A DNA stretch of 64,000 bases from Rebecca billardiae RCC1528 (GCA_965240325.2 OZ251222.1:2728001-2792000); one strand, 5' to 3'. Positions 32,613 through 52,794 are shown, counted from the first letter of the stretch. Notes: generated from the sequence alone by a model not told the origin. Numbers and translations are program-made.

Positions 32613-35600
32613 TCAAGAACTGCTGTCACTGTCCTTCCCAAACACCACCACAATCTTCGCCCGGCGCGCGATCTCTTTCCCGCCACTTCGCGACGCAGCG
32701 CGATGCTCCTCGAGCGCCTGTCAGGCGAGCGACACGCAGCAGCACAGCAGCGGGTAAGCATCAGCTGCCACGTGCGTCGCAGTGCGCGCAATGGGGTCTG
32801 CAGACACATTCCGCGTGCTGGCGCATACCTCTCTCGCCGGCCACATGTAGTCGCACTTGCCGGCGCAGCGGAAGGTCTTTGGCCCCTGGGAGGTGTAGAT
32901 GGTGTTCCAGTGCCCGCACGTCGCCCCGTCTGCGCGTGGGCTTGGACCGGACGCCTCATTGCGTCTCCCACAGCCACGGCAGCGCCAGCTCGTGCTGCGC
33001 ACGGCGTCCTCTCGCCGGAACTGCGCGATCTTGTCGGCGCACCAATCTGCCTCCGAGGTCTGCGAGAGCAGCCGCCGGAGCTCGGACGCCTTGCTTACCA
33101 CGCCAGGCGGGCGCTGGTCGAGCACGGAGAAGAAAGGGATAAAGTTCACATTCGCGGCTATCGCCCCCTCGATTTCGAAGATGTGTCCCGTATTGAATTC
33201 AGAGTTCACGGCCTGAACCAGGCGCCTCGTGTTCAATTTGGACTTGCTCACACCCAGGGGATTCGAGAGGAGGCCAGGGCTGAATGTGCTCACCTCGGCG
33301 TCTGCCGCCTGCGGGATCACCCCCAGGATGCGCATGCCCGCCGAGATGCCGCTGACATCCGCCGCCAGAGATGCGATCAGGTCGTCATGCTGCCCCTCGA
33401 CGAGCACGCCGCACGTTGAGCGCGTGGCCTCGATGAGCTCGTGCACTCTGCCGCGGCTGAGGTCGACGATGTCCTTCGGAAGCCACCATGCCGGCATGGC
33501 CTCCATCGCGCTCCACAAGCGCGTCTGCGGGTCCTTGAACCTCCCGTCTGGCATCTGCAGGAGTCGAGGGGGCAAGGCAGGGCGACGTCCATAGTTCAAC
33601 AACGCAGCACCGGGCGCATGCGCAAACGGCCAGCAGGTCGCACTTGTTCAGGGGCGAGAGGCGCGCGTGTGGGGCTTCGGGCGGCCTCACCTGGAGCCCA
33701 AGCTCGAGGGCGCGAAGGTCGAGGTGCTTCGGGATGAGCAGGCCGCCGAGCTGCGTGCCATCCGCGGTTGAGACGAGCTTGATCTTGATGTTGCCGCTCA
33801 GGCACGTGGCGATGCGCGGCCAGATCTTGAAGACCTGTGCGGGGAGAGGGCAGAACGCGCACCTCGCATGTCAAACACAGCAAGGGCACTGCGATCCGCG
33901 CGGGCGCGGGCGCTCACCGAGCCGACGAGCAGGTGCATCTCGACCTTGTGCAGGTTGTCCGCCATGGCTTGCTGCAAGACGCCGTCCCAGTACCGGCCCC
34001 ACTGCGCAAAGTGCGGCCCGTCCACGAAGATCACCTGCCAGTTGCGGGAAATCTGCGCGCCGGTCAGCGGGCGCGGCATGCTCCGGTTGTGCGGCATGAC
34101 CACGCGGTACGAGCCGTGCTCGCTGCCCGCCGTCGCGTCCCGCAGCATGACCAGCGCCATCTGGTGCGTCCACTTCTCGAGGCAGAAGGCGGCGGTCGGC
34201 ATGCCACCGTGCCGCGCGATGTGCTGGCGTCGCAGCTCGTCAGCGGCGGCGAAGCCGATGGACTGGTCCACCTCGATGGTCTTGGCGCTCACGCGCGTCG
34301 AGCTGTTGGAGTAGAGCTCCCGCGTGCGCACGATGCGCGTCTCGCGCGACGAGAGCTTCTCGAGGCCGACCTGCTTGGCCGCCTTGCTGCTCGAGGCGCA
34401 CGCGATCGCCAGCTCGATCAGCCGCGGCTGGTGCTCGATGGGCACTACGAGGATCGAGTTGAGGAAGCTGTCCACCGACGTGATGGACGACGTGATCGCG
34501 GGGCTGAGGACGTTGCCGAACGAAGGGTGCGAGCAGTTGACGCTGTCAAACCACGACTGCATCTGCGCCGTGCGGCCGCCCCACGTATATGCCAGCTGTC
34601 GCGTGAACGCTGAGGGAACACAGGCGCAGGCAGGGGCACGGGTTGCGCGCGAGATGAGCAGCCGCCACCCTCACCCCCTCCCCCCGGCGCGCGCGAGGGC
34701 GCGCGCCCCGAGGCGCGCGAAGGCACGCACTCGTGATCTCGGAGCCGGTGAGCTTCTCGACGCCGCTCGACATGCCGAAGAGGCCGACCTCGCCCGAGCT
34801 CGCGCGCCGGTCGCCCTTGGTGAGCGCGCCGAGCGACTCGAGGCGCTTGGCGATCACGCCGGCGACGCGCTTCTCGGAGGAGCAGTCCGAGGTGATGACG
34901 ATGTACTCGGGCGGCGTCACCTGGTTGGTGCGGTGCGTGCGGCCGAACGACTGCACGACGCGCGCGGCCGACCAGCCGAGCTCGGGGCAGATGTGCACGC
35001 GCCGCTGCTGGTTGAGCTCGGTCTTGTCCGCGTGCAGCGACGCGCCGGTGGCGCCCGCGTCGGTGATGATGGCGATGCGCTTGACGCCCGACTGGAACGC
35101 CTTGCGCTCGCGCACGTTGAGCGAGTCGATGTCGGCGCTCGCGCCCGTCGCCGTGCGCGGCACGTACTCGAACTTGGGCTGCCACTGCGCCGGCGCGGCC
35201 GGCACCGAGCCCTCGGCCGGCGCCGAGCGCTTGAGCAGCCGCTTGCTCCGGCCGGACATCTCCGCGACGCACTCCGGGCCGAAGTAGTTGACGAGCTCGT
35301 CGAGGCAGCACGGCGGCAGCGTGAGCCGACCGAGCCGCTCGCGCGCGCGCGCCGCGATGGCCGCGAGCCCGCCCGTGGGCGTGGCCGAGTGGTCGGCCAT
35401 GTGCTGCAGCGCGCACTGCACAATGTCACGGACCGTGCTCACGAGCGCGTCCGCGCCGCCCTCGCCGGCGAGCGAGCGCTGCGTCGACTCGTCGCCCGTG
35501 GAGAAGAGGCAGATCACGACCGAGTGCCCCGCGCGCAGCGCCTTGCGCGTCTGCGCCTTGATCTCGCGCGCCTTGATGCCGAGGAGCAGCTGCTCGAAGC

Positions 35601-37986
35601 TGCGGCCGAGCGCGCGCGTGAGCCCCGCGCGCTTGTACCCGCCGCCCGAGAATTGAAACTGGCGGTTGTACGTGTGCACGTCGTCGAGCAGGAGGCGCCA
35701 GAAGACCGCGAGCTCGTCGTACATCGCCCGATCCGCGTCGGTGAGCTTGAGGCAGACCGACGTGAGCGAGACGCCGCGGAAGCCGAGCGAGCGCGCGATG
35801 TACGCGCCCTCCGACTTGAGCGAGACGGCGAGCATCTCGAGCGCGCCCGCCGAGTTGGAGAGCACGCTCGAGACGTCCTTGGCGGTGGAGAAGGCGCAGC
35901 CCGAGCCCCACAGGCCGAGGCGCGACATGTACGTCATGTCGTCGAAGCGCGTGGCGCCTGTCGCGCTCAGGTACACGACGCGCGCCTGCGCGTGCAGCTG
36001 CTGCAGCTCGATCACCGCGCGGCCGACGACGCCGGTGCTCGCCGCCTTGGCGCGGTGCGACTCGTCGAACGCGAGCAGCCCGTCGAAGGACGAGCCGCCG
36101 AGCCACGCGCACAGCTGGTCGCGGCGCGCGGCGATCGTCAGCTGCGAGTAGGGCACGACGAGCACGCCCTCGTCCAGCCGGCTGGCGATGGACGCGCCCT
36201 GCGGCACCTTGCTGATCAGCATCGCCGGGATGTGGCCTGCGCCGATGTCGCGCAGGTCGCGGTTCGCGTCGAGCAGCAGGTCGGCGTTCGCCGTGAACCA
36301 CGCGTTGCGCTTGCGGCCGCGGAGCCAGTTCTCCCAGCACAGCGCCGCGGTCTCGCGCCCCTTGCCCACGCCCGTGCCGTCGCCGATGAAGAACCCCGCG
36401 CGCGCGCCCGACGGCAGCCGCTGCTCGTGCCGCTGGCACGCGTACACGACCGCCTCGAGCTGCACGCGCGAGAGCACGCCCGAGCCGAGCGCCTCGCGCG
36501 GCAGCAGCAGCGAGTAGCTCACGTCGGGCGGCTCGATCGTCGCGAGCGTCGCGGACTCGACCACGTGGTCCTCGTGCGGCGGGCCGAACGGCAGCTTCCA
36601 CGGCTTGTACTCCTGGAACGCGTCCTCCGCGCTCTCCTCCGCCTGCGGCTGCTCGGCGCCGTCGCCGCCGCCCGCCTGCTCCTTGGCTGCGGCCGCGACC
36701 GCGTCCGTCTGCGCCTGCTCCGTCTCGCGCTGGGAGAGAGACTCGACGACAGTGTCGCCGCCCGCGCCGAGCGGGTTCGCCGCCGAGCCGCCCTCCCCAC
36801 TCGCCACCAGCGCGTTCGTTCCGCCGCTCGAGCCTGCCGGCGCCGCCGCGCCGCCGCGCGCGTTCGCTCCGGCGGGCGCGGGCTCGTCCTCCTCGTCCTG
36901 GTCCTCTTCGAGGAAGCGCATCGCCGCAGGCGCGGCGGCGGCGGGCTGCGCCTGCGGCGGCGGCGGCGCGCCGTCGACGCGGGCCGATGCGCTTGGCATG
37001 CGCCCGAGCGGCTGCGCGACGACGAGTGCGCCCGCGCCCGCGGTGGGCACTGGCGCAAGGCTCAGCGCGCCCGCGGCTGCGGGCGTGGAGACGCTCGACG
37101 GCATCACGGCGAGCCGCGGCGCGCCGTCCATCGGCGGTGCGGCGAGTGCGGGCACGCCCTGAGACGCGATCGGCATGCCAACGACCGGGGCCGGCGACGA
37201 CTCCGCGCGCGCGCGCTTCGGTGCGTGCGCCTCAGCCTCGCCCTCGTTGTCACGCTTCTTGTCAGCGCCGTCGCAGACGTCGTCGTGGTCGAGGTCCATG
37301 ACCGAGCCGTCCACGTCCGCTCCGAGGTGCGAGTCGTCCTCCGACTCGCCACGGGGAGAGCTGGCGCCGTTGAAAGAGGGCTGTGACGGCGTGGGCACCT
37401 GCGGCGACGCCACGTCGCCCTCCTTCGTGCTCGCAGCAGGCGCGCGCCGGCTGGTGCGAGCGGCACTCGCGACTGCGTCGAGCGCACGCACTTCAGCAAA
37501 GCGGGCGGGCCACGCGTGCTTGGCGTGCGCGGCGCCGGAAGACGGCAGAGCCGGCGAGATCGCCCGCTGTAGGGCCACGAGCGCGTCCTCGAGAAGGCGG
37601 ATGCCCTCGCCATCATCAGCCGACAGCCGCGGGCCCGCGGTGGCGGCGTCGCGCAGCGCATGCGCCCAACACTCATGGTACGTCGTCCACTGCTCGACGC
37701 GAAGCTGATCCTTGACGGCGGACTCGACGTCGAGCATGCACTGCGCCAGTACCGCGAGCGCCGGGTCGCCCGCGTCGGCTTCCGCACCGAGCCGCTCGAC
37801 GTACTTGCGCTGCAGCCACGACCACTTGCTCTTGACAGCGGTCCATGGGAGATCGTTCTCGATGGCGATGAGGCCCTCGACGACGGCGTCCACGCGCGTC
37901 TTCGCACCCCTGAGCCGTGCCGTCGATGCCTCCGCGGCGCCGGCGTGGCCGCCGCCGTCGGGCGTCGACGCGTTGCGCGTTCGCAT
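32613..37986 (-). CDS. SBNO: Strawberry notch (SBNO)-family helicase-like protein; predicted exons 37986-34731, 34609-33918, 33834-33691, 33554-32829, 32717-32613
   Basis: [64 protein letters not shown]...[47 protein letters not shown]...GLLIP. The last two exons are inferred from splice sites and frame. Confidence 0.9.
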
Positions 37987-38292
37987 GGGCTGCTCGCTCC
38001 GTCGTGCGCCAACAGCGCGATGACCAGTGCGACCGCCAACGACACGACCGCAACAAGGCACAAGGGCGTGTGCCGATCATCCGGAATGCACTTGGTTTTT
38101 CTTTGCCCATCCGGACCGGGAGTTCTCCGGTTGTCCGGAGGCTTCCCGGATTGGTGGCTTGCCTCGTGGGCTCGTGGCGCAAGAGGCCGAGCAGGTGCGT
38201 GCGATTGGGAGCGCGGGCGCCGAGGCGCGCGCGGGTGTGCGCGCGGGGGGAGGGAGGGGCACAGCACGCGCACGCCGGCAGCCGCGACGGGC

Positions 38293-38373: not shown

Positions 38374-38680
38374 TGGCGGTCGCAGCGGCGGCGGCGCGGG
38401 GGCGCCCGGCGGGATGGGCACGCGAGATGCGGCACGCGCTGAGTGTGGTGGACGGCACGCGTGACTCCACAAGCTAATAGCCGCACGCGACGCACTCGTG
38501 CGCGTGCGGTTACAATGCTGGAGGAGACTGTGCTGGAAATCGAACGCGGCTGCCCTCGCTGACAAGGCCGAGCCGGCCGCTTTGCACCTTCCTGACAACA
38601 GCTCGAGGGGCGGGACGCTCATGCCCGACGCGCCGCGCCCCTCCCCTCGCCACCCATCGTGCCCGCCGCGCGCCCGCAGG

Positions 38681-38939
38681 ATGCCGTCCCACAAGCGCCT
38701 CAAGACGAAGATCACGCTGGCGAAGAAGATGAAGCAGAACCGGCCGATCCCGCAGTGGATCCGCCTCCGCACCGACAACAAGATTCGGTGCGCGGCGGCG
38801 CGGTCGCGCGCCGCAGCATCGCGGCCGGCCCGCAGCGCCACGTACGCACGCCGGCGCTCACATCGCTCCCCGCACCCGTCCCGCGCACAGGTACAACATG
38901 AAGCGGAGGCATTGGCGCCGCACCAAGCTCGGCCTGTAA
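38681..38939 (+). CDS. RPL39: 60S ribosomal protein L39; intron 38788-38890
   Basis: MPSHK...[24 protein letters not shown]|[15 protein letters not shown]. Confidence 0.98.
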
Positions 38940-41466
38940 AGCCGCACGGGCCCGCGGGCCACGTGCGGGGGCAGCAGCGTGTGGCTGGATGCTCTGGGTC
39001 GCGCAGCGCGACGCGCACGCGCTGCACGGCCTCGGTCACGAATCGCCACTCGAGCAACCGCGGCTTCGTTCGCATCACTACGCCGGCCATCTCGAGGCGA
39101 GCGCTGCATTCCCATGGGCCGCCGCCGCCGGTGAGTCGGAGAGTGAGTGTCGGCTCGCGACATGTACGTAAGCGATACAGTAAAACGTCGCGGCGCGGCG
39201 CGCACATTCCGATTATCGGCCGTATGGCGTATCGCCCCTAATCATCAGTTTCACTCTGTTTCTGAGTCTCAGTGACATGATGAACCGCACTCCGCAGGCT
39301 GGATTCCCGGATCACTCACGGATCAGGATGGCGGATCGGATCGGGGCTGATCCGCGATCCGGGCGCGGGCGCTCAGCCCGCGGCCGTGGGTCGCCCGCCC
39401 CCGGCGTCGGCGACCGACTGAGTTTATTTGTCGTCAGCCTGATGCAAATCGCAACGGCAATCCGCCATCCGGAAATTGACATCCGGCATCCGGCATCCGC
39501 CGCCGATTACAGTCGCCCGCCGCATCGGCCGTCGGGGCCGGTCGTACCAGGCCTAATAAGGCTAAGTCGATCAGCCCGTCGACTGGCGTCCGGCGCGTCC
39601 GCGCGTCCGGCGTCACGCACGGTCGCACCCGCCGCGGCGGCCTGAATCACCCGGTGGGACCGGTGTGCCACTCTGTCCGCCGGGCCCGGTGGGCGGTATA
39701 TGCGTCGTAATATATATATTAAGCAACCGGCCGTGCGGCCCGTGCCGGGCGTGCGGCGGCGCGCGGCCCGCGCGCCCACCCGGGCTACCGCCGGCCCGCC
39801 CGCGGCCCGGCGAGCCCGGCCGGTTAAGACTGTCGTGACCGTCGGGAGACGAAGCGTAAATGTCACTACGTATTTCGTTGCCAGCGGGACCGATCAGCGG
39901 AGCCTTATCGGCCCTGATGATGACACTTACTTAAACCAGCCGCGCAGTCCTGACCGAGAGTGACCCTGAGTAGTGAGTGCCCTGCTGCCAGTTCGGCAGT
40001 CCGCGATCCCGCTCGCGTAGCGACCGGGCAACGGCCAGCGGCAGGGCGACCCGCATCCTGATTGATTAGCTGAATCATGCTGATTGATGTCAGCGTGCAG
40101 CGGGTCCCAGCGGCACTGGAATCGGACCTTCCTCACAGTGGTAGCAGTACTGTCATACTCAAGCTACGGACTGCGAAGTATAGGCCGAGGGCTGTGCTGT
40201 CTAAAGTATACGGTAAATACGGACGATGACTTCCAATGGGCACACGCCGACACGCGGACGCCGGGCCGACGCCGGGCCGGGGACGGTATTGGCTGGCTAG
40301 TGCCCGCGGCTACTAGCTTACCGACTCAAGGAGTCTCCGGCGACACTAGGGCAGGGAGCGGGTCCACTGACTGGCGAGTGGCCACGGCGAGAAGCCAACA
40401 GTCCGCATGCGGCATGTTGCAACCGCAGTCGCGTGGTTCTGATTGAGTCCGGCCGGCCGCACGGGCACGCCGTCGTTGTATGCTCGGTAGGCGCCGTCGA
40501 GGAGCTTCCCGTATGGCCCGGCAACCCGGCTAGCGCGGAACATGACGATGACAGCAGAGTCTTGGAGTGCTCTGCTCATTGCGCGTCACTCTTAGTCTCG
40601 TGGTCTGCCGCAAGTCTGGCCGCAAGTCTTGAGCTATCCGTCTTCCAAAGCTCCACTCGCCCGCCGCGGATGTTCAGGAGCCCCGGCCCCTCAACCCCTC
40701 AACCGGGCGACAGCCCGTTAACGAAGCCGAGCATGCGAGCTGTTCACAACGCGCTCACATGCGAACGCCTGCACCATCTCAGCTGGCCCCAGTCGCCCTG
40801 GGGCCAGTCACCACTGTCCACTCCAAGGCGCTGCTACGTGTATCATCGTTGTACTACTGTTTTGTGTAAGGTATTGACGGAGAGTCTTGACTCGGTGTCC
40901 CAGCATGTCCGCATGCTGCTAGCCGCCAGGCTTCGGCCCGGGTCCCAAGAGTGAAGTCAGCTGTAAGCTCGACATACATGCCGCCTGGCGGCCTCGCAGG
41001 AATTTGGCCCGGCTCAGCAGCGACCTGGCCTGTTCCGGCACTGGCGAGCGCGGACTGCTCGATCAGAGCTCGGCACGTACTGTACGCGGCTGAGGGGGCA
41101 GGGCATGAGATCAAGAGTAACACGGCCACACTCGGCAAGACGACTGCTCACCAAGGAACGTTCGTGTGATCAGGCCAGTCAAGCCTGAGGAGGGGAGGAG
41201 GCACCGCGGCGGCCGGGCCGCCATCTTGCTTGATGTCAAGTGTCAACGGCCCGTTCACATCGTAAATCAAGGTCATGCAGAGTTCAGAGTACTGGGGGTA
41301 GTGTTCATCAATACTCTTCATTCACAGCAGCAAAGGAATGTTCATGATCAAATGTGATGTCAGACTCACTCGTTCGGTCGGAACTGAACGGCTGTGGACC
41401 TTGGCTGGACGCCGCCGCTGCTCAAGTCGGCAAGGTCACCATCGTCAGCGTCACCGGTCGTTGCCG

Positions 41467-42936
41467 ATGCTCGCCTTCGTGCAAAAGGGCCTCGAAACGC
41501 TCAAGAAGTCCATCGAGGAGGGCAGGCTGGCCGTCGGCGGTGACCGCCACGAGATCGCCACACGCCCCGCCAAAGCGGCTGACGTGCCGATCGCGCGCGG
41601 TGCGACGAAGAAGTCGAAGCGGCGCAGCGGCGGCTCGGATGCTGGCCGTGCGGCCAAGGTGCCGCGACCTGCACCAGTTGCGAAGCCGAAGGTGGGCGCG
41701 CGCGTGTACATCATGCGGGCGAACCTTCGCGAGGGCTTCATCGTCCTGACGAACGACGGGCGCGAGAGCGGCAGCATCGGCGGCTGGACCTTGCGCAGCG
41801 GAGCGACTGGGAGCGTCGTTTACAAACTGCCGGAGGGCACAGCGATCGAGGCGCGCACCGCGCTGGTGCTGCTGGCGCCGGGTGGCGAGACGCCCGAGGC
41901 GTTCAAGCACGACTACGTCAAGGAGCTCCGCTCCTCCCGCGCGTGGCCGGACGCGCTCCTCCTCCACGACGCCGACGGCACGGTCGTGGACGGCGAGGTG
42001 GACATCAACAGCGCCTCGTCGACACCGTACGGCGCGCTGGTCGGCAGGGCGGAGAACTACTACCGCGAGCTGGTTTCGCAGCTGGTCTCGCAGCGGCTCT
42101 TCGCCAAGTCGCCCGGCATGGTGGGCCCCTCGAACGTCAGCGCGGAGAGCGTGCGCTTCACGTACGACACGAGGACGGTGTGCGCGCGCGCGGGCGTGCC
42201 GCGCGCTGCAGCGGTGGCACGCGCGCGAGTCCACGTTGGCGCGCGCACGACCAGCGGCCGCGCTTGCATCCTGCGCGCCGCGCGCTGCCCTTGAGGCCCG
42301 CGTCGCGCCCCCGCCCCCCGCTCGCAGCACATGATCACACTCGTCGAGCAGTTCGCAGCCCACCTCGTGCACGCGTGCGCGACCGAGGACAGCGCAGACG
42401 CGACGGCGGTGGCCGTCTGCTCGGCGGTCGAGGACGCGCTCCCTGCGTGCGATGTGCAGCGCCGCGCGGTGGCGGAGGTCGCGCGCAGCGCGGAGCACAC
42501 GCAGCTCTTCCTCATGAACGACGCCGACGCGCAGAAGGTCGCGGACGCGCGCTACACCGCCGACGCGGACGCGCCCCGGCTGACGTGGGAAGGCGTGCAC
42601 GCGCTCGCGGTCGCCATCGACTACTTCCTCGTGCGTGCACGCGCGCTGCGCCGCGCGCCCCGCCCCCGTCGAGCCGGGCGCGAGAGCGGCGGCGTGCCCG
42701 CGCCCGCGCGCGCTCCTCGCCGATCGCAGGTCGAGCTGATCGAGACGGTTGCGACCATCGCGTACGCGGAGACCACCAACCCGTCCGCGCAGGGCGACGC
42801 GCACAAGCACACGAGCGACTTTTGCTTTGGCGCGCTCGACAGGCTCAGCCTGCAGATGGCCATCCGCATGGACCCGGATCTGAACAAGATCTGCGCGGCT
42901 GTCGACTCGCGGCCTGCCCGTGTGTCGACGAGCTGA
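41467..42936 (+). CDS. Lamin-tail-domain + tandem H2B/H2A histone-fold protein (406 aa); exons 41467-42177, 42328-42630, 42730-42936
   Basis: LTD-like FIVLTN...SIGGWTL...YKLP; H2B-like MITLVEQF...AVEDALP...RAVAEV; H2A-like LAVAIDYFLVELIE...LQMAIRMDPDLNKI; two phase-0 GT-AG introns. Confidence 0.75.
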
Positions 42937-44985: not shown

Positions 44986-47699
44986 ATGGCGAGCCTGAAG
45001 CAGACGCAGATCGGCTGGCAGAGCTATGAGGCGGCTGGTATCATCAGCCGCGAGCAGCTCGAGATGCTCTACTGCTACGACAAGCAGCCCATCTCGACGC
45101 AGGTGGCCCTGTTCATGCAGGTGCGCGCCCGCGCCCAGTCGGTGGCGCTGCATCAGCGTCTTGATGCGCCGCGCATCAGCGGCGCGTGCATGGGTGTGAG
45201 GCGGCATGAGCACGACCGTGGGCACTCGGCGCACGGCTATGCATGCCAGTGCTCACCTGCCGTCCCCGCGTGCCCGCACGTGCACCCCCCCTGCGCGCCC
45301 CGGCGCCCGCGCGCCGCAGCGTGGCGAGGCCTACGTCGAGCTGTTCGTGGTCATCCTGCAGAACGTCAACAAGGAGGAGACGGTGCAGTACGTGCTGGCT
45401 ATGCTCGATGATCTGCTCGTGGGTGCGTGCTGCGACGCGCCCCCCATTGGCGCACGCGACGCGCGCTCCTACGGCCGGCCAGGCTTGCTCGCTGCGCGCG
45501 GGCACTCGAGCTGAGCCCTGCGCCGCGCACGCCCGTGTGCATGCCCTGCGCGCTCTGCGCCCGTGCCTGCAGCCAAGCCTGATCTCGGCCTGTACTGGCA
45601 CGAGCTCCTGCGCAACTCGGGCGCCGAGGTCGACCCGTTCGCGCCGATCATGCGCCTCCTGGGCCGCACCAACGGCTTCATCCTCGAGAAGGCGGCGCTG
45701 GTGCTCGGCCGCATCCTCTCGCTCAAGTCGCACACCCTCGGTGCGTGCCCGGGCGTGGCGCGGGGTGGGTGGCGGGGCGGCGGGTGGCGCGCCGCCGCGC
45801 GGCGAGAGTGGCCGGAGGATGGCGTGCGGGACGGCGGGGGCCAGCTCGTCGAGGCCTGCTGGCTGCGGCTCAGCCTCAAGGCGCCGGACCCTCAGGCTCG
45901 ACAGCCAGCCTCGTGCGCGGCAGCGCACCGCCGGCGCGGCGTTGCCAAGCAGCCGGCCAGCAGCCAGGCCTCTGCGGGGCCAGCCGAGGTCGGTCGGCGC
46001 CTCTGGAGGCTCCGGCATGGAGGCCGGGCCGGGCGCCAACGCACGCGCCTCCGACGCCTCGGGAGCCCGCCTTGGCCGCGCTGCCACTCGCGCAGTCGAC
46101 CACCTGCTCACCTGCGCACCCGCACACGGCGCGTGCGACTCTGCCCGCGCCGGCCTTTTGCGCCGCCGCCGCTCGCCGCTCGCCGCGCAGGCGTTGAGGT
46201 CGAGGAGGTGACGGAGTCGGACGAGGTGACGCAGCGCCACCTGCTCACGTTCACCGAGTGGATCTTCCACCAGGTCCAGACGGCGCACAGCCTCGAGATC
46301 AACGAGGTGCGCGCTCTCGCGCAGAGGCGCCGCGCCGCGCGCACCGGGCTGGCACCGCCTCGCCGTGCCGCGCGGGCGGTGTGGCGCAGCGTGGGGCGTG
46401 CAGGCGGTGGGCGACCTGCGAGCGTGCACGCGGCGGGTGCTCCGGCAGCCCCCGGTGGGCACACGCGCGCGTGCTCACGCACGGCGCCCCCCCTCCTTCC
46501 TCCCCGCGCGCGCCCCTCGCGCGCTGCAGTGCCCCAAGCTCCACTACGCCCTCTCTGCCATGATGGCGCTGCTCGTGACCGACACGGGCCGTGGCGCCGT
46601 GATGGAGGTGAACGGGCTGAACACGATCGTCTCGATGCTCACCCGCGCGACCGCCATCATGTCCGAGTCCATGTCGCCGTCGACGGTGCAGCTGCTGTAC
46701 CAGGTGCGTCCCGCCGCGCATCCCAAGGCCCGCGCGCGCGCGCGCACCGAGGCGGCGGCTGGCCGCGCGCGTTCGCTCGGCGCTCACCCTCACGCCCCCC
46801 ACCCCGCCTCCCGCGCCGCTCGCTGCGCGCGGCGGCTGCTGCGATCTGCGCGCGGCCTGTTGGCTCTGCCCTCGGCGCGCAGCTCGTCTTCTGCCTGTGG
46901 TGCCTCTCGTACAACAAGGACATCGCGGAGCAGATGGCGGGCGGCGAGCTCAAGGTGATCCCGCAGCTCGTGCACATTGCCAACACGGTCGTCAAGGAGA
47001 AGGTCTCGCGCGTCTGCCTCATGACGCTCAAGAACATGCTCGGCCACGGCGCGGGCAACGCGAACGACCAGATGGTGACGGCGGGCATCATGAAGGTGCT
47101 CTCGACGCTGGGCACGCGCAAGTGGGCGGACGAGGACATCGCCGAGGACATCTCCGAGCTCAACGAGTCACTCGAGATCGACGTCTCGGCTCTCTCCACG
47201 TTCGACGTGTACAAGACGGAGGTCTACTCGGGCGCGCTCGAGTGGTCGCCCTCGCACAAGTCGACCCAGTTCTGGTCGCAGAACATCTCCAAGTTCTCCG
47301 AGAACCAGTACCAGATTGTGCAGACGCTCATCGGCATGCTCAAGGTGCGCGCCGCGCCCGCGCGAGCCGAGCGAAGCCGCTGCCGCCGCGCGCAGGTGGC
47401 GCTCGCGCGCCGACGCGCGCCGCTCACCCCGCGCCCGCCTCCCGTGCCGCACCCGCCGTCCGCCCGCGGCGCGCGCGTCGCAGTCCGAGTCGTCGAGCCC
47501 GACGGCGCTCGCGGTCGCGTGCCACGACATCGGCAACTTCATCCAGTACCACCCGGACGGCCGCAAGCTCGCCTCCTCCTTTGGCGCCAAGGAGCCGCTG
47601 ATGGGGCTGCTGACACACCCGGACGGGGACGTGCAGAAGCACGCGCTCACCACCACGCAAAAGCTGATGGTGATGAACTGGGAGATGCTCTCCAAGTAA
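44986..47699 (+). CDS. ATP6V1H: V-type H+-ATPase V1 subunit H, about six introns
   Basis: IGWQSY, ETVQYVLAMLDDLL, VQLLYQ|LVFCLWCLSY, VKEKVSRV, KWADEDI, LEWSPSHKSTQFW, LAVACHDIGNF. Confidence 0.95.
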
Positions 47700-48673
47700 G
47701 CGGTGAGCCAGGCGGGACGAGCGAGCGCCGCGCGCGCAGCGTCGGCGCCCCGGCCGGAGGGCTGGCGGGGGGCGGCGTGCAGCGCGGCGTCGGACCAGGC
47801 GAGCTGCGTGGGCAGCAGCGGAGGCGTAGGTGCTCGGGCGCGCGAGTCACTTGATCATCAACGGCTCATTCAGTCATCAATCACAACGAGCACGGGTTGT
47901 CGGCGAGGCGAGGGTCTGACTCCGTGGGCGTGGTCACTTGCATTCATCGTGACTCTGACGCATTCGCGACTCGCCGGCAGCGGCGGCAGTCGCCGCGCGT
48001 GGCGTCCGGGCGGCTCAGGCTGCTCAATCGCGTCGATCCGGTCAGCACGCTGATGCGGGCCACGCGCTTGCAGCCGGACCGTCCCGCGTCCTGACGCGAT
48101 CGGCGATCAGCCATCTGCGCCAAGCTGCGGGTCATACTCGCGCGCCGGCCGGGCGTGGTGGTGAGGGAAACTATGTGGTTACGAGTGATGTGGCTAGCAG
48201 GTCGTACTCGTAGTCGTAGTTCCGCACGGCACGTCAACGTGTTGCCACGGGCCACGTGAGTGACGTACGTGAGTCGACGACGACTGCTGAATCTCACTGA
48301 GTCGTGTCGTCGGTAGTGTCGTGTCACTCGTGACTCCGTGACTCAGGTGACTCGGTCTCGTGTCCGTCGTGTGACCGTGTCTCGTGACGCGACTAGGCAG
48401 TAGCCGCGGAGTCGTATCATCATATAGTAGTAGCAGTGCGTCTGCAGCATAGGCTCGTCCGGATTCCGGAAGACCCGGGCTGCCAGGTACATTACTAAAT
48501 AAATAGTCATGACAGTCACAGACAGCAGCTGAATAAGAGACTCAGACGGACCGAGTCTCAGCCGACGAGACTCGATCTGATATAGACTGCTTATAGAGGC
48601 GGCGTCGGAATCCGACTCAGTGGCAATGGCACCAATGTCAATATGGCATCAAGTCAACAGTCATCATCACGAG

Positions 48674-49557
48674 TCACGTCTTGGCCTTTGGCACCAGCGC
48701 AGCCGTGGCGAGCTCGACGAGCTTGTCGAAGTCCACCGCGACGTACTTGCCCCAGAAGGGGCACGAGCGCCACTCCATCGCGCCGAAGGAGACGCTGCTG
48801 ATGCCGTGCATCACGCGCGCGATACTGACGGCCGTGAGCGCGTGCGTGCCGCTGTACCGCCGCACGAAGACGCGCATGTCCGCGTGCGCGTACTGCAGCT
48901 CCAGCCACTGCCGCTTGCGCGCGGCCGCGTCCACCACCGGCGCGTCGGCGTCTGGGTCAGCCGTGTCAGCGGCGTGCGGCGCCCCGCTCGCGCCGCGCGC
49001 CCCGGCGGGCTCGTCGGCAAAGTACGCGGCGATCTCGCGCGCGAGCACGTCCTCCTCCGGCCGCTCGGCCGCGCGCGTCATCATCCCGTGCAGAGCGTGC
49101 ACGCGCGCCGACTCGAGCCGCTCGCGCGCCGCGAGGACCGAGCAGAGCGCGCGGCCGAGCGCCGGGACGTCGGCCGGCTCGGCGAGCAGCTCGAGCTGGG
49201 TGGAGCGCTCGCGCAGCCGGAAGCTCAGCTGCTTCGCCTCCTGCAGCGCGCTCAGCTCGGCGCACACCGCCTCGAGCGAGATGTTGAACTCCGCCGCCGC
49301 GCTGCCCAGCTCGGCCACGTACGTCCCGTCGCGCGTGAGCTTGGCGCGCGCGAGCACGTGGTGCATCAGCGGCACGCGCGCGCGGAGCTCCTCGGGCGAG
49401 GCGCCGCTGAAGGTGATCTCGGCGGAGGAGTGCACGTCGGGGAGCCGCCGGGCGTAGCGCACCGCCGTGAGCGCGGCGGCGGCGGCAGCGGCGGCGTCCG
49501 AGGAGCCGTCCGCCGGCCCAGCCGCCTCGGCCGCCTCGGCCGCTTCGGCCGCGGCCG

Positions 49558-49608
<51 letters not shown>

Positions 49609-52501
49609 CCGCGCGCTCGGCCGCTCCGGCATCGGCGCCCTCGAGGAAGGCGAGGATCGTCATGATCGTCTCCTCGGTCATGTCGAGCTCCGCGCACATG
49701 GTCGGCGGCTGCAGCAGCACCGTGCGCGGCAGCGCGCCGCCGCGGCGCTGCCGGCAGAACACAGCCTCGAGCAGCCGCCCGACCGCCGCTGCGTCGACCG
49801 CGCTCGAGTGCGCGAGCGAGCTGAGCCGAATCCGGTCCGTCTCATCGAAGAGGCACACGCACTGCCCGCCCTTTCCGTCGCGCCCCGCGCGGCCGCTCTC
49901 CTGCACGTAGTTCTCCGGCGAGCGCGGCAGCCCGCAGTGCACGACCGCGCGGATGTCCGCGCGGTCCACGCCCATGCCGAAGGCGACGGTGGCGACGAGC
50001 AGCGGCACGGCGCCGCGCTCGAAGCGCTTGTGCACGCGCTCGCGCGCCACCTGCGACAGCCCCGCGTGGTAGATCTGCACGCTCGGCTCGCCCGCGGCGC
50101 GGATGGCGGAGGCGGCGGCCTCGGTGCCCGCGCGCGTCGAGCAGTACACGATGGCCGGGCGCGCGCCCTTCAGCTCGCCCAGCAGCAGCCGCGCGAGCTG
50201 CGCGTGACGCTCCGACCCCACCGAGCGCACGGCGCGCAGCCGCAGGTTGGGCCGACTGGGCGGGCGCGCGAGCAGCCCGCCGCCGCCCGCGTCGTCCGCC
50301 GGGATGCCCAGGGCGCGCATCACGGAGCGCGCGGTGCGCGGCGTCGCCGTCGCGGTGAGCGCGAGCACGCAGCGCACGCGCAGCTGCTCGCGCAGCACGC
50401 GCCCCAGCGAGAGGAACGACGGGCGGAAGTGGTGCGCCCACTGCGAGACGCAGTGCGCCTCGTCGACGCACGCAAACGAGAGCTCGAGCGAGCGCAGCGT
50501 CTGCACAAACGCCGGGCAGAGCAGCCGCTCGGGCGAGACGAAGAGGAGCTTGGGCGAGGGCGTGGCCGAGTCGGAGAAGTCGTGGCGCAGGCTCGCCAGC
50601 ACCGCCGTCGCCTCCGCCCGGCTCTGCGCGCTCGTCAGCCGCGCCCCGATCAGCTCGGGCGGCAGCTTGCTCAGCTGGTCCTCAATCAGCGCCAGCAACG
50701 GCGACACCACCAGCACGAGGCCCCGGCACAGCAGCGCGGGCAGCTGGTAGCACAAGGACTTGCCCGCGCCCGTCGGCAGCACGACGAGGGTGCTCCGCCC
50801 CGCGAGCACGCGCTCCACCACCTCGCGCTGCCCCGGCCGGAAGTGCTGGTGCCCGAACACGTCGCGCAGCGCGGTGAGCGGGTCTGCGCCGTGCCAGCGC
50901 GCGGCCGCGGCGCGCGGCCGGCGGGCGGGCGCGGGCGCGGCAGCCGGCATGGTCGGCGCGGGATTACGCCGCAGCCGCGGCGCCGACGAGCTTCCGGCGC
51001 CGTCCGCCGCGCCGGATGCGCCGGGCTGCGGCGCGCCCTCCGGCGCATCCTCCGCCGACACCGCCGCCTCTGCCTCGCCCGCGCCCGCCGCCTCCTTGGC
51101 CTTGGCCGCGGCGATCACCGCCTCGATCTCGGCGGGCGAGATCGCCATCGGGTCGGCAAGAAGGCTCGCGCTGCCGCCCGCGGGGCGCGCGGTGCCGTCG
51201 AGGCTCGCGTGCATCATCTGCCGCCGCCGGCGGCCGTCGCGCGCCTGCCGCCGCTGGTTCGCGCCCCCGCGCTTGAGCCGGATGGGCATGGAGCGCTTCA
51301 GACTCGTCTTGACGAAATTGTCGTTGGCGCGGTTGCGCACCGGCGCGGCCGGCTTGGCCGAGCGGCCGTGCTTGCGCTTCGGCTGAGCCGCCGCGCTTGG
51401 CGCGGCGGCGGAGGCGCGCTTGCGCTTGGCGCCTGCCGTGCCGCCCGAGGCCGAGGCGTGCGCGCGTCCGCCGATCGCGGCAGCCATCTCGTCCTCCTCC
51501 TCCTCCTCCTTCTCCTCCTCCGAGGACTCATCACTCTGAGCGCCCAGCCTCGCCGCAGCCGGGCGGCGGGCGCGGCGTGGCGCGGCGCGCGGCGCGCTGC
51601 TGCGCGCCGCCGGTGCGGCGCGGGCGGAATGGAGCACGTCCTCGTCACACTCGGCACCGCTCAAGCCGGCATCGCCGCCGCCCCCCGCGCCCTCGTCGCC
51701 GTCGTCCGTGCGCTCCAGAGCGCCCGCGCCCGCGGGCGGCAGCAGCCCCAGCTGCCTGAGCACCTCGTTGTTTGCGGCGATGTTGGCCTGGCGCGCAGCC
51801 TCGGCCTCGGTGGGCGCGGTGCTCGCCATCCACGCCCACTTGCAGTGCAGGCCCGGCTCGGGGCACACGCAGCCGCGCTCCACGCTGCACAGCACCATCT
51901 TCGCCGCCGCCGCCTCTGCATCTGGTGGAGGTGCGCACGGCTCGCACGTCCGCTCGTGCTCGTCGGTGCTGCGCGCGGGCGGCGGCACTGCCGAGCGGTC
52001 CAGAATGCCGCCACCGCGGATGCCCGCGACGCTCGGCACGGATAACGGAGCCGCAGACAACGGCACGTCGCGCTCCGTCCACGGAAGCGCGAGTCCGCCT
52101 GAGCGCACTGCGACGTCCGCACGGCCGCCATCTGGCGGCGCCGCTTGCGCTCGCGAGCTCCCCTGCGAGGCATCGACACCGCCAGGCGCCAGCTCGGAGG
52201 GGCGCGGGGCGTGCTTGGAGAGGCGCAGAAGACGGCTTGGGCTCATGATCTTGCGGCGCTGCGCGTTGCCGTCAGCGAGCGGCATCGCCGGGCGCGCGGG
52301 CTTGCTCGCCGGCGCCGGCGGCTGCGCAACGGTTGATGCGCTCTTGGCGCGGCGATAGTCGGTGTACAGAGCCGCGATCTCAGGGGTGGCACTCACCTCG
52401 GCCTTCGTCGGCTCCCGCCCATGCGCATTCCGGAACGCGCGCTCCCACTCCTTGATCGCCCGCTTCAGCTCGCCCGCGTCGGCGCCGCTCGTGTCGGGCA
52501 T
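48674..52501 (-). CDS. RECQL4: RecQ4-type helicase with Sld2/Drc1-like N-terminus, intronless
   Basis: LKRAIKEWERAF...GREPTK, DNFVK, LPTGAGKSLCYQLP, VDEAHCVSQWAHHFRPS, ATVAFGMGVD, YVQESGRAGRDG, IARVMHGISS...FWGKY. Confidence 0.95.
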
Positions 52502-52794
52502 CGAGGCCAACCGTCGTTCGACGAGCAAATTCAACCACGATCGCAGCGTGTCCGGAGCTGTCCAGTGGCATCAACGGTGTTCTGGCCACTCGGACTGGTA
52601 GTACCGGTCGGGAGTACCCTTGCCAGTAGCCCAGTACTCACAATTATGAGGCGCCGGTCTTTCTTGTTGACGAACGGATTCCTCCGCCGCGCGAGCTGCT
52701 CCGATGCAGTGGTGAGCAGCGTTGACGAATGAACAGGCTTGGAACAGGCCTCCCGTGAGCGTGCTAAACGACGTGCGGCCGTATGGGCTCGATC

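Follow-up and report, generated by a model that had tools for sequence, protein, structure and literature searches.

A lamin tail domain joined to a predicted double histone fold in a three-exon gene of the haptophyte Rebecca billardiae

Gene structure and orthologue family

We analysed a 64,000-nucleotide stretch of DNA from Rebecca billardiae RCC1528 (GCA_965240325.2 OZ251222.1:2728001-2792000), referred to here as the window, with a focus on one gene that runs on the plus strand from start to stop codon at 41467..42936 and comprises three exons and 406 codons. Exon 1 (41467..42177, 237 amino acids) encodes an N-terminal helix/motif, a basic linker, a lamin tail domain (LTD), and alpha1 and loop L1 of the first of two predicted histone folds. 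It is followed by exon 2 (42328..42630, 101 amino acids) and exon 3 (42730..42936, 68 amino acids plus the stop codon), giving 237 + 101 + 68 = 406 residues in total. Intron 1 (42178..42327, 150 nucleotides) is a phase-0 intron with an in-frame stop, and its borders, read from the DNA, are GT at 42178 and AG at 42326-42327. Intron 2 (42631..42729, 99 nucleotides) is likewise in phase 0, with GT at 42631 and AG at 42728-42729, and is itself in frame and free of stops. In the list of open reading frames (ORFs), the gene appears on the plus strand as two adjacent ORFs, 41338..42294 (318 amino acids) and 42331..42936 (201 amino acids). The ORF track runs unbroken across intron 2 because this intron is in frame and contains no stop codon. 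This split had been pointed out in an earlier note on the same DNA, which proposed one gene with two phase-0 introns and a 406-residue product. The strings TKKSKRRS, VYIMRANLREGF, YYRELVSQ, RLTWEGVHALAVAIDYFL with VELIE after it, and LQMAIRMDPDLNKI were all located in the exon translations.

In a multiple alignment, the three exon translations tiled onto two orthologues, P0002 and P0003, with neither gap nor overlap, exons 1 and 2 as well as exons 2 and 3 meeting on adjacent columns. The exon translations were 62-77% identical to P0002, with exon 1 matching end to end at 62%. When P0002 was compared by BLASTP with the ORF that spans exons 2 and 3, the alignment held a single 33-residue gap, which corresponded exactly to intron 2. 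Using tblastn and inspection, we found GT..AG introns at the same two positions in L002 (Diacronema), L006, L007, and L008, and the exon-sized fragments that an exhaustive profile search recovered from other genomes read into introns at the same two points. Moreover, P0002 and P0003 are encoded uninterrupted on the transcript contigs L001 and L003, respectively, and therefore a single mRNA spans the LTD and the C-terminal domain in relatives. The outcome of two separately transcribed genes, which the earlier note had named as a refutation, is contradicted in these relatives. Overall, 41467-42936 is one three-exon gene, as proposed, and both of its GT..AG introns are confirmed.

The gene was queried as separate exons (41467-42177, 42328-42630, and 42730-42933) and as the stop-free ORF formed by exon 2, intron 2, and exon 3. 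The search with exon 1 returned P0001, which is the window's own unspliced protein call, and P0002, a 401-residue complete ORF on an MMETSP transcript. When the C-terminal part of P0002 was used as the query, P0003 (KFE25_001897 of Diacronema lutheri) was recovered, a protein of 381 residues annotated as 'LTD domain-containing protein'. P0002 and P0003 are 41% identical to each other, and these full-length natural orthologues served as proxies for the 406-residue window protein in the structure work. The named family members, from Diacronema lutheri and Pavlovales sp. CCMP2436 (KAJ1630713.1; P0004), all belong to the Pavlovales, and the remaining members derive from an MMETSP transcriptome and sequencing runs. 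Searched exhaustively with the family profile, 1.84 billion representative proteins gave 113 matches, of which only about 12, all orthologues or fragments of their exons, contained the C-terminal domain. The remaining matches, about 100, contained the LTD only and included bacterial multi-LTD proteins. The best of these LTD-only matches (P0012, P0014, P0018, and P0020) are large multi-LTD proteins, some from metagenome-assembled genomes of Gemmatimonadota/Pyrinomonadaceae, and not eukaryotic lamins. P0007 and P0013 were left out of the family alignment, because these whole fragment proteins contaminated it with intron read-through tails. The alignments used for structure prediction left out the six exon rows of loci L006-L008 as well; the profile search of the PDB and the column statistics used the alignment that includes them. 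Overall, the haptophyte gene is nuclear, expressed, and ordinary in character, and its family is small. Within this conserved, transcribed gene, the basic linker with its cluster resembling a nuclear localisation signal (NLS), a lamin-type immunoglobulin (Ig) fold, and the predicted double histone fold are shown to occur always together.

Two further features of the locus concern how it might be read. If intron 2 were retained, 33 Arg/Ala/Pro-rich residues would be inserted in the long alpha2 of histone fold 2. Read-through of the equivalent intron in Diacronema ends in a stop, and the insert is absent from the transcripts of both relatives; an isoform that retains intron 2 is possible in the window gene and is not conserved. 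On the minus strand, an ORF of 462 amino acids (41422-42810) covers nearly the whole gene. Throughout the window, where the guanine-plus-cytosine (GC) content is 58-77%, long ORFs frequently overlap between the two strands, and this ORF is most likely an artefact of composition and no gene. Rfam and tandem-repeat scans around the gene gave nothing relevant.

Domain architecture of the encoded protein

The orthologues P0002, P0003, and P0004 share with the window protein an N terminus that begins MLA, and a helix is predicted behind it, at residues 2-30 in P0002 and only at residues 3-10 in P0003. An N-terminal motif could be followed from the window (41467-41530) to P0003, P0004, and P0007 as an MLA or MLS start with a subsequent LKRGR-like basic patch, and it is duplicated in P0004. 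The next segment is a disordered basic linker with an isoelectric point (pI) of 11.7 in P0002 and a low predicted local distance difference test score (pLDDT) in the models. In the window protein, this linker holds the NLS-like cluster TKKSKRRS (41605..41628), and clusters of the KKRK/KKSKRR type are present at the linker position in every orthologue.

The LTD, an Ig-like beta sandwich, lies at 41704..41994 (approximately residues 80-176 of the window protein) and is indicated by both Pfam and Foldseek. The Pfam family PF00932 matched residues 90-175 with E 7e-8, scoring 33.2 bits for exon 1 and 33.3 bits for P0002 against a curated cut-off of 34.3. Five of the 13 alignment members gave PF00932 matches, and the precomputed annotation assigns this family to P0001-P0004. 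In the AlphaFold2 model of P0002, beta strands are predicted at residues 78-174, and Foldseek matched this part to the Ig folds of lamin B1 and lamin A/C (3jt0_A, E 1.3e-6 and template modelling (TM) score 0.70; 1ifr, TM 0.66). The same search with the P0003 model again returned lamin Ig folds (E 5e-5), so that an Ig-like beta sandwich of the lamin globular-tail type is present in the predicted structures of both orthologues. In addition, in a profile search of the PDB, the family aligned with lamins A and B1 (E 0.003) over a stretch that leads from the NLS region of these lamins into their Ig fold. That exon 1 carries an LTD is supported by Pfam as well as by fold, and the two N-terminal features of the earlier note, an NLS-like stretch followed by an LTD-like beta domain, were both borne out.

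Comparing the family with nuclear lamins, it becomes apparent that the basic NLS-like cluster stands directly before the Ig-like LTD in both. However, the window family has no coiled-coil rod and only one N-terminal helix of about 29 residues or less. It also does not finish with a CaaX end; the window protein terminates in ARVSTS, and the ends of the orthologues vary, none of them being CaaX. In place of the lamin end, the window family has the double histone fold. Haptophytes possess lamins, and rod-less LTD-like proteins exist in several eukaryotes (Koreny and Field, PMC5630835), a work in which this fusion is not described. Together with nuclear lamins, the LTD-only proteins of protists are among the nearest known counterparts of the family.

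The C-terminal domain was modelled with AlphaFold2 from 13 alignment rows. The best model of P0002 had a mean pLDDT of 72.8 and a predicted TM score of 0.66, with most of the helical domain at 75-90. It contains four helices at residues 186-212, 231-251, 262-272, and 277-291 and another four at 300-314, 322-352, 374-383, and 385-395. Single-residue bridges at 229, 260, 320, and 372 place one such contact in each of the four loops; isolated bridges in these positions are the signature of two histone folds with paired L1 and L2 loops. Transferred from P0002 (residues 186-291), the 'H2B-position' fold, histone fold 1, lies at 42028..42495 with intron 1 inside it and runs through alpha1, L1, alpha2, L2, and alpha3 to a C-terminal helix. 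The 'H2A-position' fold, histone fold 2, lies at 42520..42906 (transferred from residues 300-395 of P0002) with intron 2 inside it; it has alpha1, L1, a 31-residue alpha2, an insertion of low confidence, alpha3, and a short helix at its C terminus. The extra helix behind alpha3 in each fold is expected under an H2B-then-H2A order. The P0003 model has the same eight-helix pattern with loop bridges, and the helix boundaries fall on conservation blocks in the alignment columns. In the predicted structure, therefore, two alpha1-L1-alpha2-L2-alpha3 units are packed head to tail in one chain.

Foldseek searches against the PDB returned dozens of H2A-H2B structures with probability 1.00 over 170-213 columns and TM scores of 0.6-0.72. 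Among them were a single-chain H2B-H2A chimera (6w4l; E 1.3e-5, 176 columns, TM 0.62), two H2A.Z-H2B single chains (4m6b_D, E 1.8e-5 and TM 0.69; 4nft_C, TM 0.72), and a chain of the Melbournevirus nucleosome-like particle (7n8n_B; E 1.5e-4 to 2.9e-4). The histone domain of SOS (1q9c_D) matched the P0003 model with a TM score of 0.72 and a root-mean-square deviation of 3.4. In the BFVD collection of predicted viral structures, the top match was the Marseillevirus H2B/H2A fusion D2XB49 (E 6.2e-6), with other doublets of the H2B/H2A type next, and the Melbournevirus miniH2B-H2A reached a TM score of 0.69. H4-H3 doublets in the same collection gave E-values of 2.5e-3 or worse, at least two orders of magnitude behind the H2B/H2A fusion. 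The C-terminal ~210 residues are thus predicted to form two different histone folds that pair into a pseudo-heterodimer, arranged topologically like H2B with H2A. We consider it very probable that the protein combines a basic linker, an LTD, and a double histone fold in one chain.

Several observations weigh against this assignment of the C-terminal part. At E <= 10, Pfam returned no histone family for the window exons, the exon 2-exon 3 ORF, P0002, or the 13 members, and phmmer/hmmsearch returned no histone chain from the PDB with the single pieces, the whole-family profile, or an exon-3-only profile. No histone was present among the 113 matches in the representative proteins either. Indeed, the C-terminal ~210 residues gave no Pfam or PDB match of any kind by sequence or profile, and none of the sequence searches linked them to a protein beyond the family. 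The models were built on a shallow alignment, whose 13 rows represent about 6-8 species, and those of P0002 and P0003 are not independent because both derive from one alignment. Only the best of the five models was confident, with mean pLDDT values falling from 72.8 to 55.3 for P0002 and from 70.5 to 51.0 for P0003. Moreover, alpha2 of fold 1 is short, at 20-21 residues. With hhalign, no similarity was detected between fold 1 and fold 2. Taken at face value, the failure of every sequence and profile search to return a histone, the dissimilarity of the two halves, and the wide spread of model confidence would suit a lineage-specific helical domain whose histone-fold model is an artefact of prediction from a shallow alignment. 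However, two orthologues that are 41% identical gave equal eight-helix patterns with loop bridges, Foldseek matched dozens of H2A-H2B structures over 170-210 columns with probability 1.00 and, separately, SOS, and the helices start and stop where the conserved blocks do. We regard an artefact as unlikely.

The prediction also bears on the identity of the two folds, which the earlier note had named as H2B-like followed by H2A-like. The AlphaFold and Foldseek check that it suggested, run here on P0002 and P0003, returned a lamin Ig fold and a pseudodimer of the H2A-H2B type. Two histone folds, with H2B-H2A doublets as their best matches, are upheld in the predicted structures. That the two folds descend specifically from H2B and H2A, and do not represent a generic or convergent double histone fold, is not established, because no profile or sequence comparison recovers a histone and the SOS domain has about the same TM score.

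Charge, ancestry and cellular origin

Counted over the exon pieces, the doublet region of the window protein has 4 lysines, 14 arginines, 17 aspartates, and 12 glutamates in 217 residues, which gives a net charge of -11 and a pI of ~5. The corresponding charges are -11 in P0002, -11 in P0003, and -9 in P0004, again with a pI of ~5. It is well established, and stated in PMC12330702, that nucleosomal histones are highly basic. Fold 1 comes directly after the LTD, with only a short linker between the two, and therefore lacks a basic N-terminal tail. At the other end, the last helix stops at residue 395 of 401 in P0002, and the window protein has 9 residues beyond the equivalent point; since the chain thus ends 6-9 residues past the last helix, there is no H2A-type docking extension. 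Neither a strongly basic, lysine- and arginine-rich fold with basic tails nor a docking domain after alphaC, as in core histones, was found here. Several arginines at loop and helix-end positions are conserved in the alignment columns, and therefore the domain may still make local contacts with DNA or another nucleic acid, which is a point against the protein-binding function favoured below.

These features bear directly on whether the protein is a true histone variant, in which the H2B-H2A doublet substitutes for the H2A-H2B dimer in nucleosomes and shows a lamin Ig fold on chromatin. Its best fold matches are indeed single chains of the H2B-H2A type and viral doublets, and viral doublets form nucleosome-like particles (PMC8357426). 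The NLS-like cluster and the arginines kept at loop and helix-end positions would suit a histone variant as well. However, the doublet carries only 4 lysines and a net charge of -11, its acidity is conserved in four orthologues, it has neither a basic N-terminal tail nor a docking extension, and no histone profile matches it. We therefore consider a histone variant very unlikely. A nucleosomal role of the doublet is unlikely in general, it probably does not wrap DNA, and the suggestion of the earlier note that the protein enters or mimics nucleosomes is weakened by the same acidic, lysine-poor, tail-less character. Precedents for such a fold exist: the electrostatics of the Sos double histone fold are unsuited to nucleic-acid binding, its role being in protein-protein contacts, and no evidence exists for a replacement of nucleosomal histones by multidomain double-histone-fold proteins in eukaryotes (PMC13088155).

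A related reading retains the ancestry while giving up the nucleosomal substitution. The protein might have arisen, in this lineage alone, from a cellular H2B-H2A pair that was fused into one chain and joined to the lamin Ig fold; despite its acidity it would act at H2A-H2B positions or at the H2A-H2B-binding sites of chaperones or H3-H4 and couple chromatin to lamina partners. We hold this to be decidedly improbable. If it were true, a natural eukaryotic doublet would inform the debate on whether viral doublets were taken from eukaryotes or given to them.

The surroundings of the gene are cellular. It is flanked by genes for a Strawberry-notch-like helicase, ribosomal protein L39, V-ATPase subunit H, and a RecQ4/Sld2-like helicase. 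In three genomes, the gene for V-ATPase subunit H is only a few kilobases away from the LTD-doublet gene, namely at 45563-47851 (plus strand) in the window, at 4174-6391 in L002 of Diacronema lutheri, and at 1590-2759 in L008. The 2-kilobase windows that cover the gene have a GC fraction of 0.63-0.68, within a range of 0.58-0.77 for the whole window. No relatives were found in 2.9 million IMG/VR viral contigs, and none were found in JGI metagenome contigs. Because the introns and neighbours are shared, the flanks are cellular, and viral relatives are lacking, a recent viral origin is unsupported.

The earlier note had raised a giant-virus origin. Exchange with a giant virus, whether by capture of an endogenised viral histone doublet or by donation to one, draws on the Marseillevirus fusion that tops the viral structure search and the TM score of the Melbournevirus miniH2B-H2A, together with the statement that single-chain histone repeats are rare in eukaryotes (PMC11222145), but it is the least plausible of the explanations and extremely improbable given that no sequence relative was found in the viral contigs or, beyond the orthologue set, in the 1.84 billion representatives, that two spliceosomal introns keep their positions in five genomes, that the V-ATPase subunit H neighbour is held in common amid cellular flanks and GC like that of the surroundings, and that identity to viral doublets (10-18%) is not above that to cellular H2A-H2B.

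The neighbouring genes themselves can be described further. The Strawberry-notch-type helicase is encoded by an ORF at 34546-38058 (minus strand) with AAA_34 (E 9e-95) and Helicase_C_4 (E 1e-56) matches, and the RecQ4-like ORF at 48674-52531 (minus strand) has a Drc1-Sld2 domain at its N terminus together with DEAD and Helicase_C domains. The ribosomal protein L39 signal (PF00832), mapped from the genes of L004 by coordinate offset, falls at ~38504-39241 (plus strand) within a much longer ORF upstream of the gene. A TMEM230/134 gene stands beside V-ATPase subunit H in L002 and L008; the microsynteny is loose, and the orientation differs in the window.

Relation to known proteins and proposed role

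On balance, we favour as the probable explanation a cellular haptophyte protein with an LTD and a double histone fold, in which the acidic pseudodimer serves as a protein-binding module. From the N terminus, its parts would be a short helix/motif, the disordered basic linker with the NLS-like cluster, the LTD, and the C-terminal double histone fold. The basic cluster, placed directly ahead of the Ig fold as in lamins, may direct nuclear import. Being acidic, poor in lysine, and without tails, the pseudodimer would not wrap DNA and would act instead as a module for binding proteins. The Ig fold and the acidic pseudodimer may then offer two independent interaction surfaces, and the protein could function as a nuclear adaptor or scaffold that links partners of the Ig fold with basic nuclear proteins bound by the pseudodimer, for example histones or histone chaperones. 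That the protein is nuclear and acts as an adaptor is our inference, which counts against the reading as a whole, and we put the adaptor mechanism forward as a tentative proposal.

By mechanism and fold, the window protein belongs with the double histone fold (DHF) proteins, and a repurposed interaction module, as in Sos and ABTB2, appears to fit better than a nucleosomal histone. Like Sos and ABTB2/Cca3 (DHF, ankyrin, and BTB), it has an intramolecular histone pseudodimer within a multidomain, non-nucleosomal protein. Its electrostatics, similar to those of Sos, are unlike those of a DNA-wrapping histone (PMC13088155), and the ABTB2-type DHF is described as H2B-like and then H2A-like, which is the order seen here (PMC13088155). 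However, the partner domain in the window family is an LTD, whereas Sos has DH-PH-REM-Cdc25 and ABTB2 has ankyrin-BTB. The window family is found in haptophytes, whereas Sos and ABTB2 are found in animals and their close relatives, and there is no detectable sequence similarity between them.

The H2B-H2A doublets of Marseilleviridae are likewise single chains, and their fold order and C-terminal helices agree with those of the window family in Foldseek comparisons. At 10-18% identity, however, there is no relationship at the sequence level, and the window gene, in contrast to theirs, is cellular and spliced and encodes an acidic doublet attached to an LTD. Canonical H2A-H2B and H2A.Z-H2B dimers share the overall pseudodimer fold, with engineered single-chain constructs as the best PDB matches. 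The window family differs from canonical H2A-H2B in having no Pfam Histone match (PF00125, PF16211) and an identity of only 14-17%, and moreover in being acidic, in lacking tails and a docking extension, and in the short alpha2 of fold 1.

A 2026 review of double histone folds lists the classes Sos, ABTB2/Cca3, Cca3S, SPT3, and HSIH-DHF (high-identity H3/H4) and contains neither a lamin nor a haptophyte entry (PMC13088155), and a companion paper presenting new double histone folds from eukaryotes deals with H3/H4-like proteins. Our literature search found no paper that combines 'lamin tail domain' with 'histone fold'. The combination of an LTD with a double histone fold therefore appears undescribed, in agreement with the earlier note, whose author knew of no such fusion.

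The current annotation of the family is 'hypothetical' or 'LTD domain-containing', and its histone-fold half is unannotated. The known eukaryotic double-histone-fold classes are centred on animals, so that the haptophyte LTD fusion, as predicted here, would represent both a new architecture and a new lineage, with two hallmark nuclear modules joined in one polypeptide. It would also be the second natural case, after Sos, of a histone pseudodimer without histone electrostatics, and may be useful for asking what the histone fold does without DNA binding.

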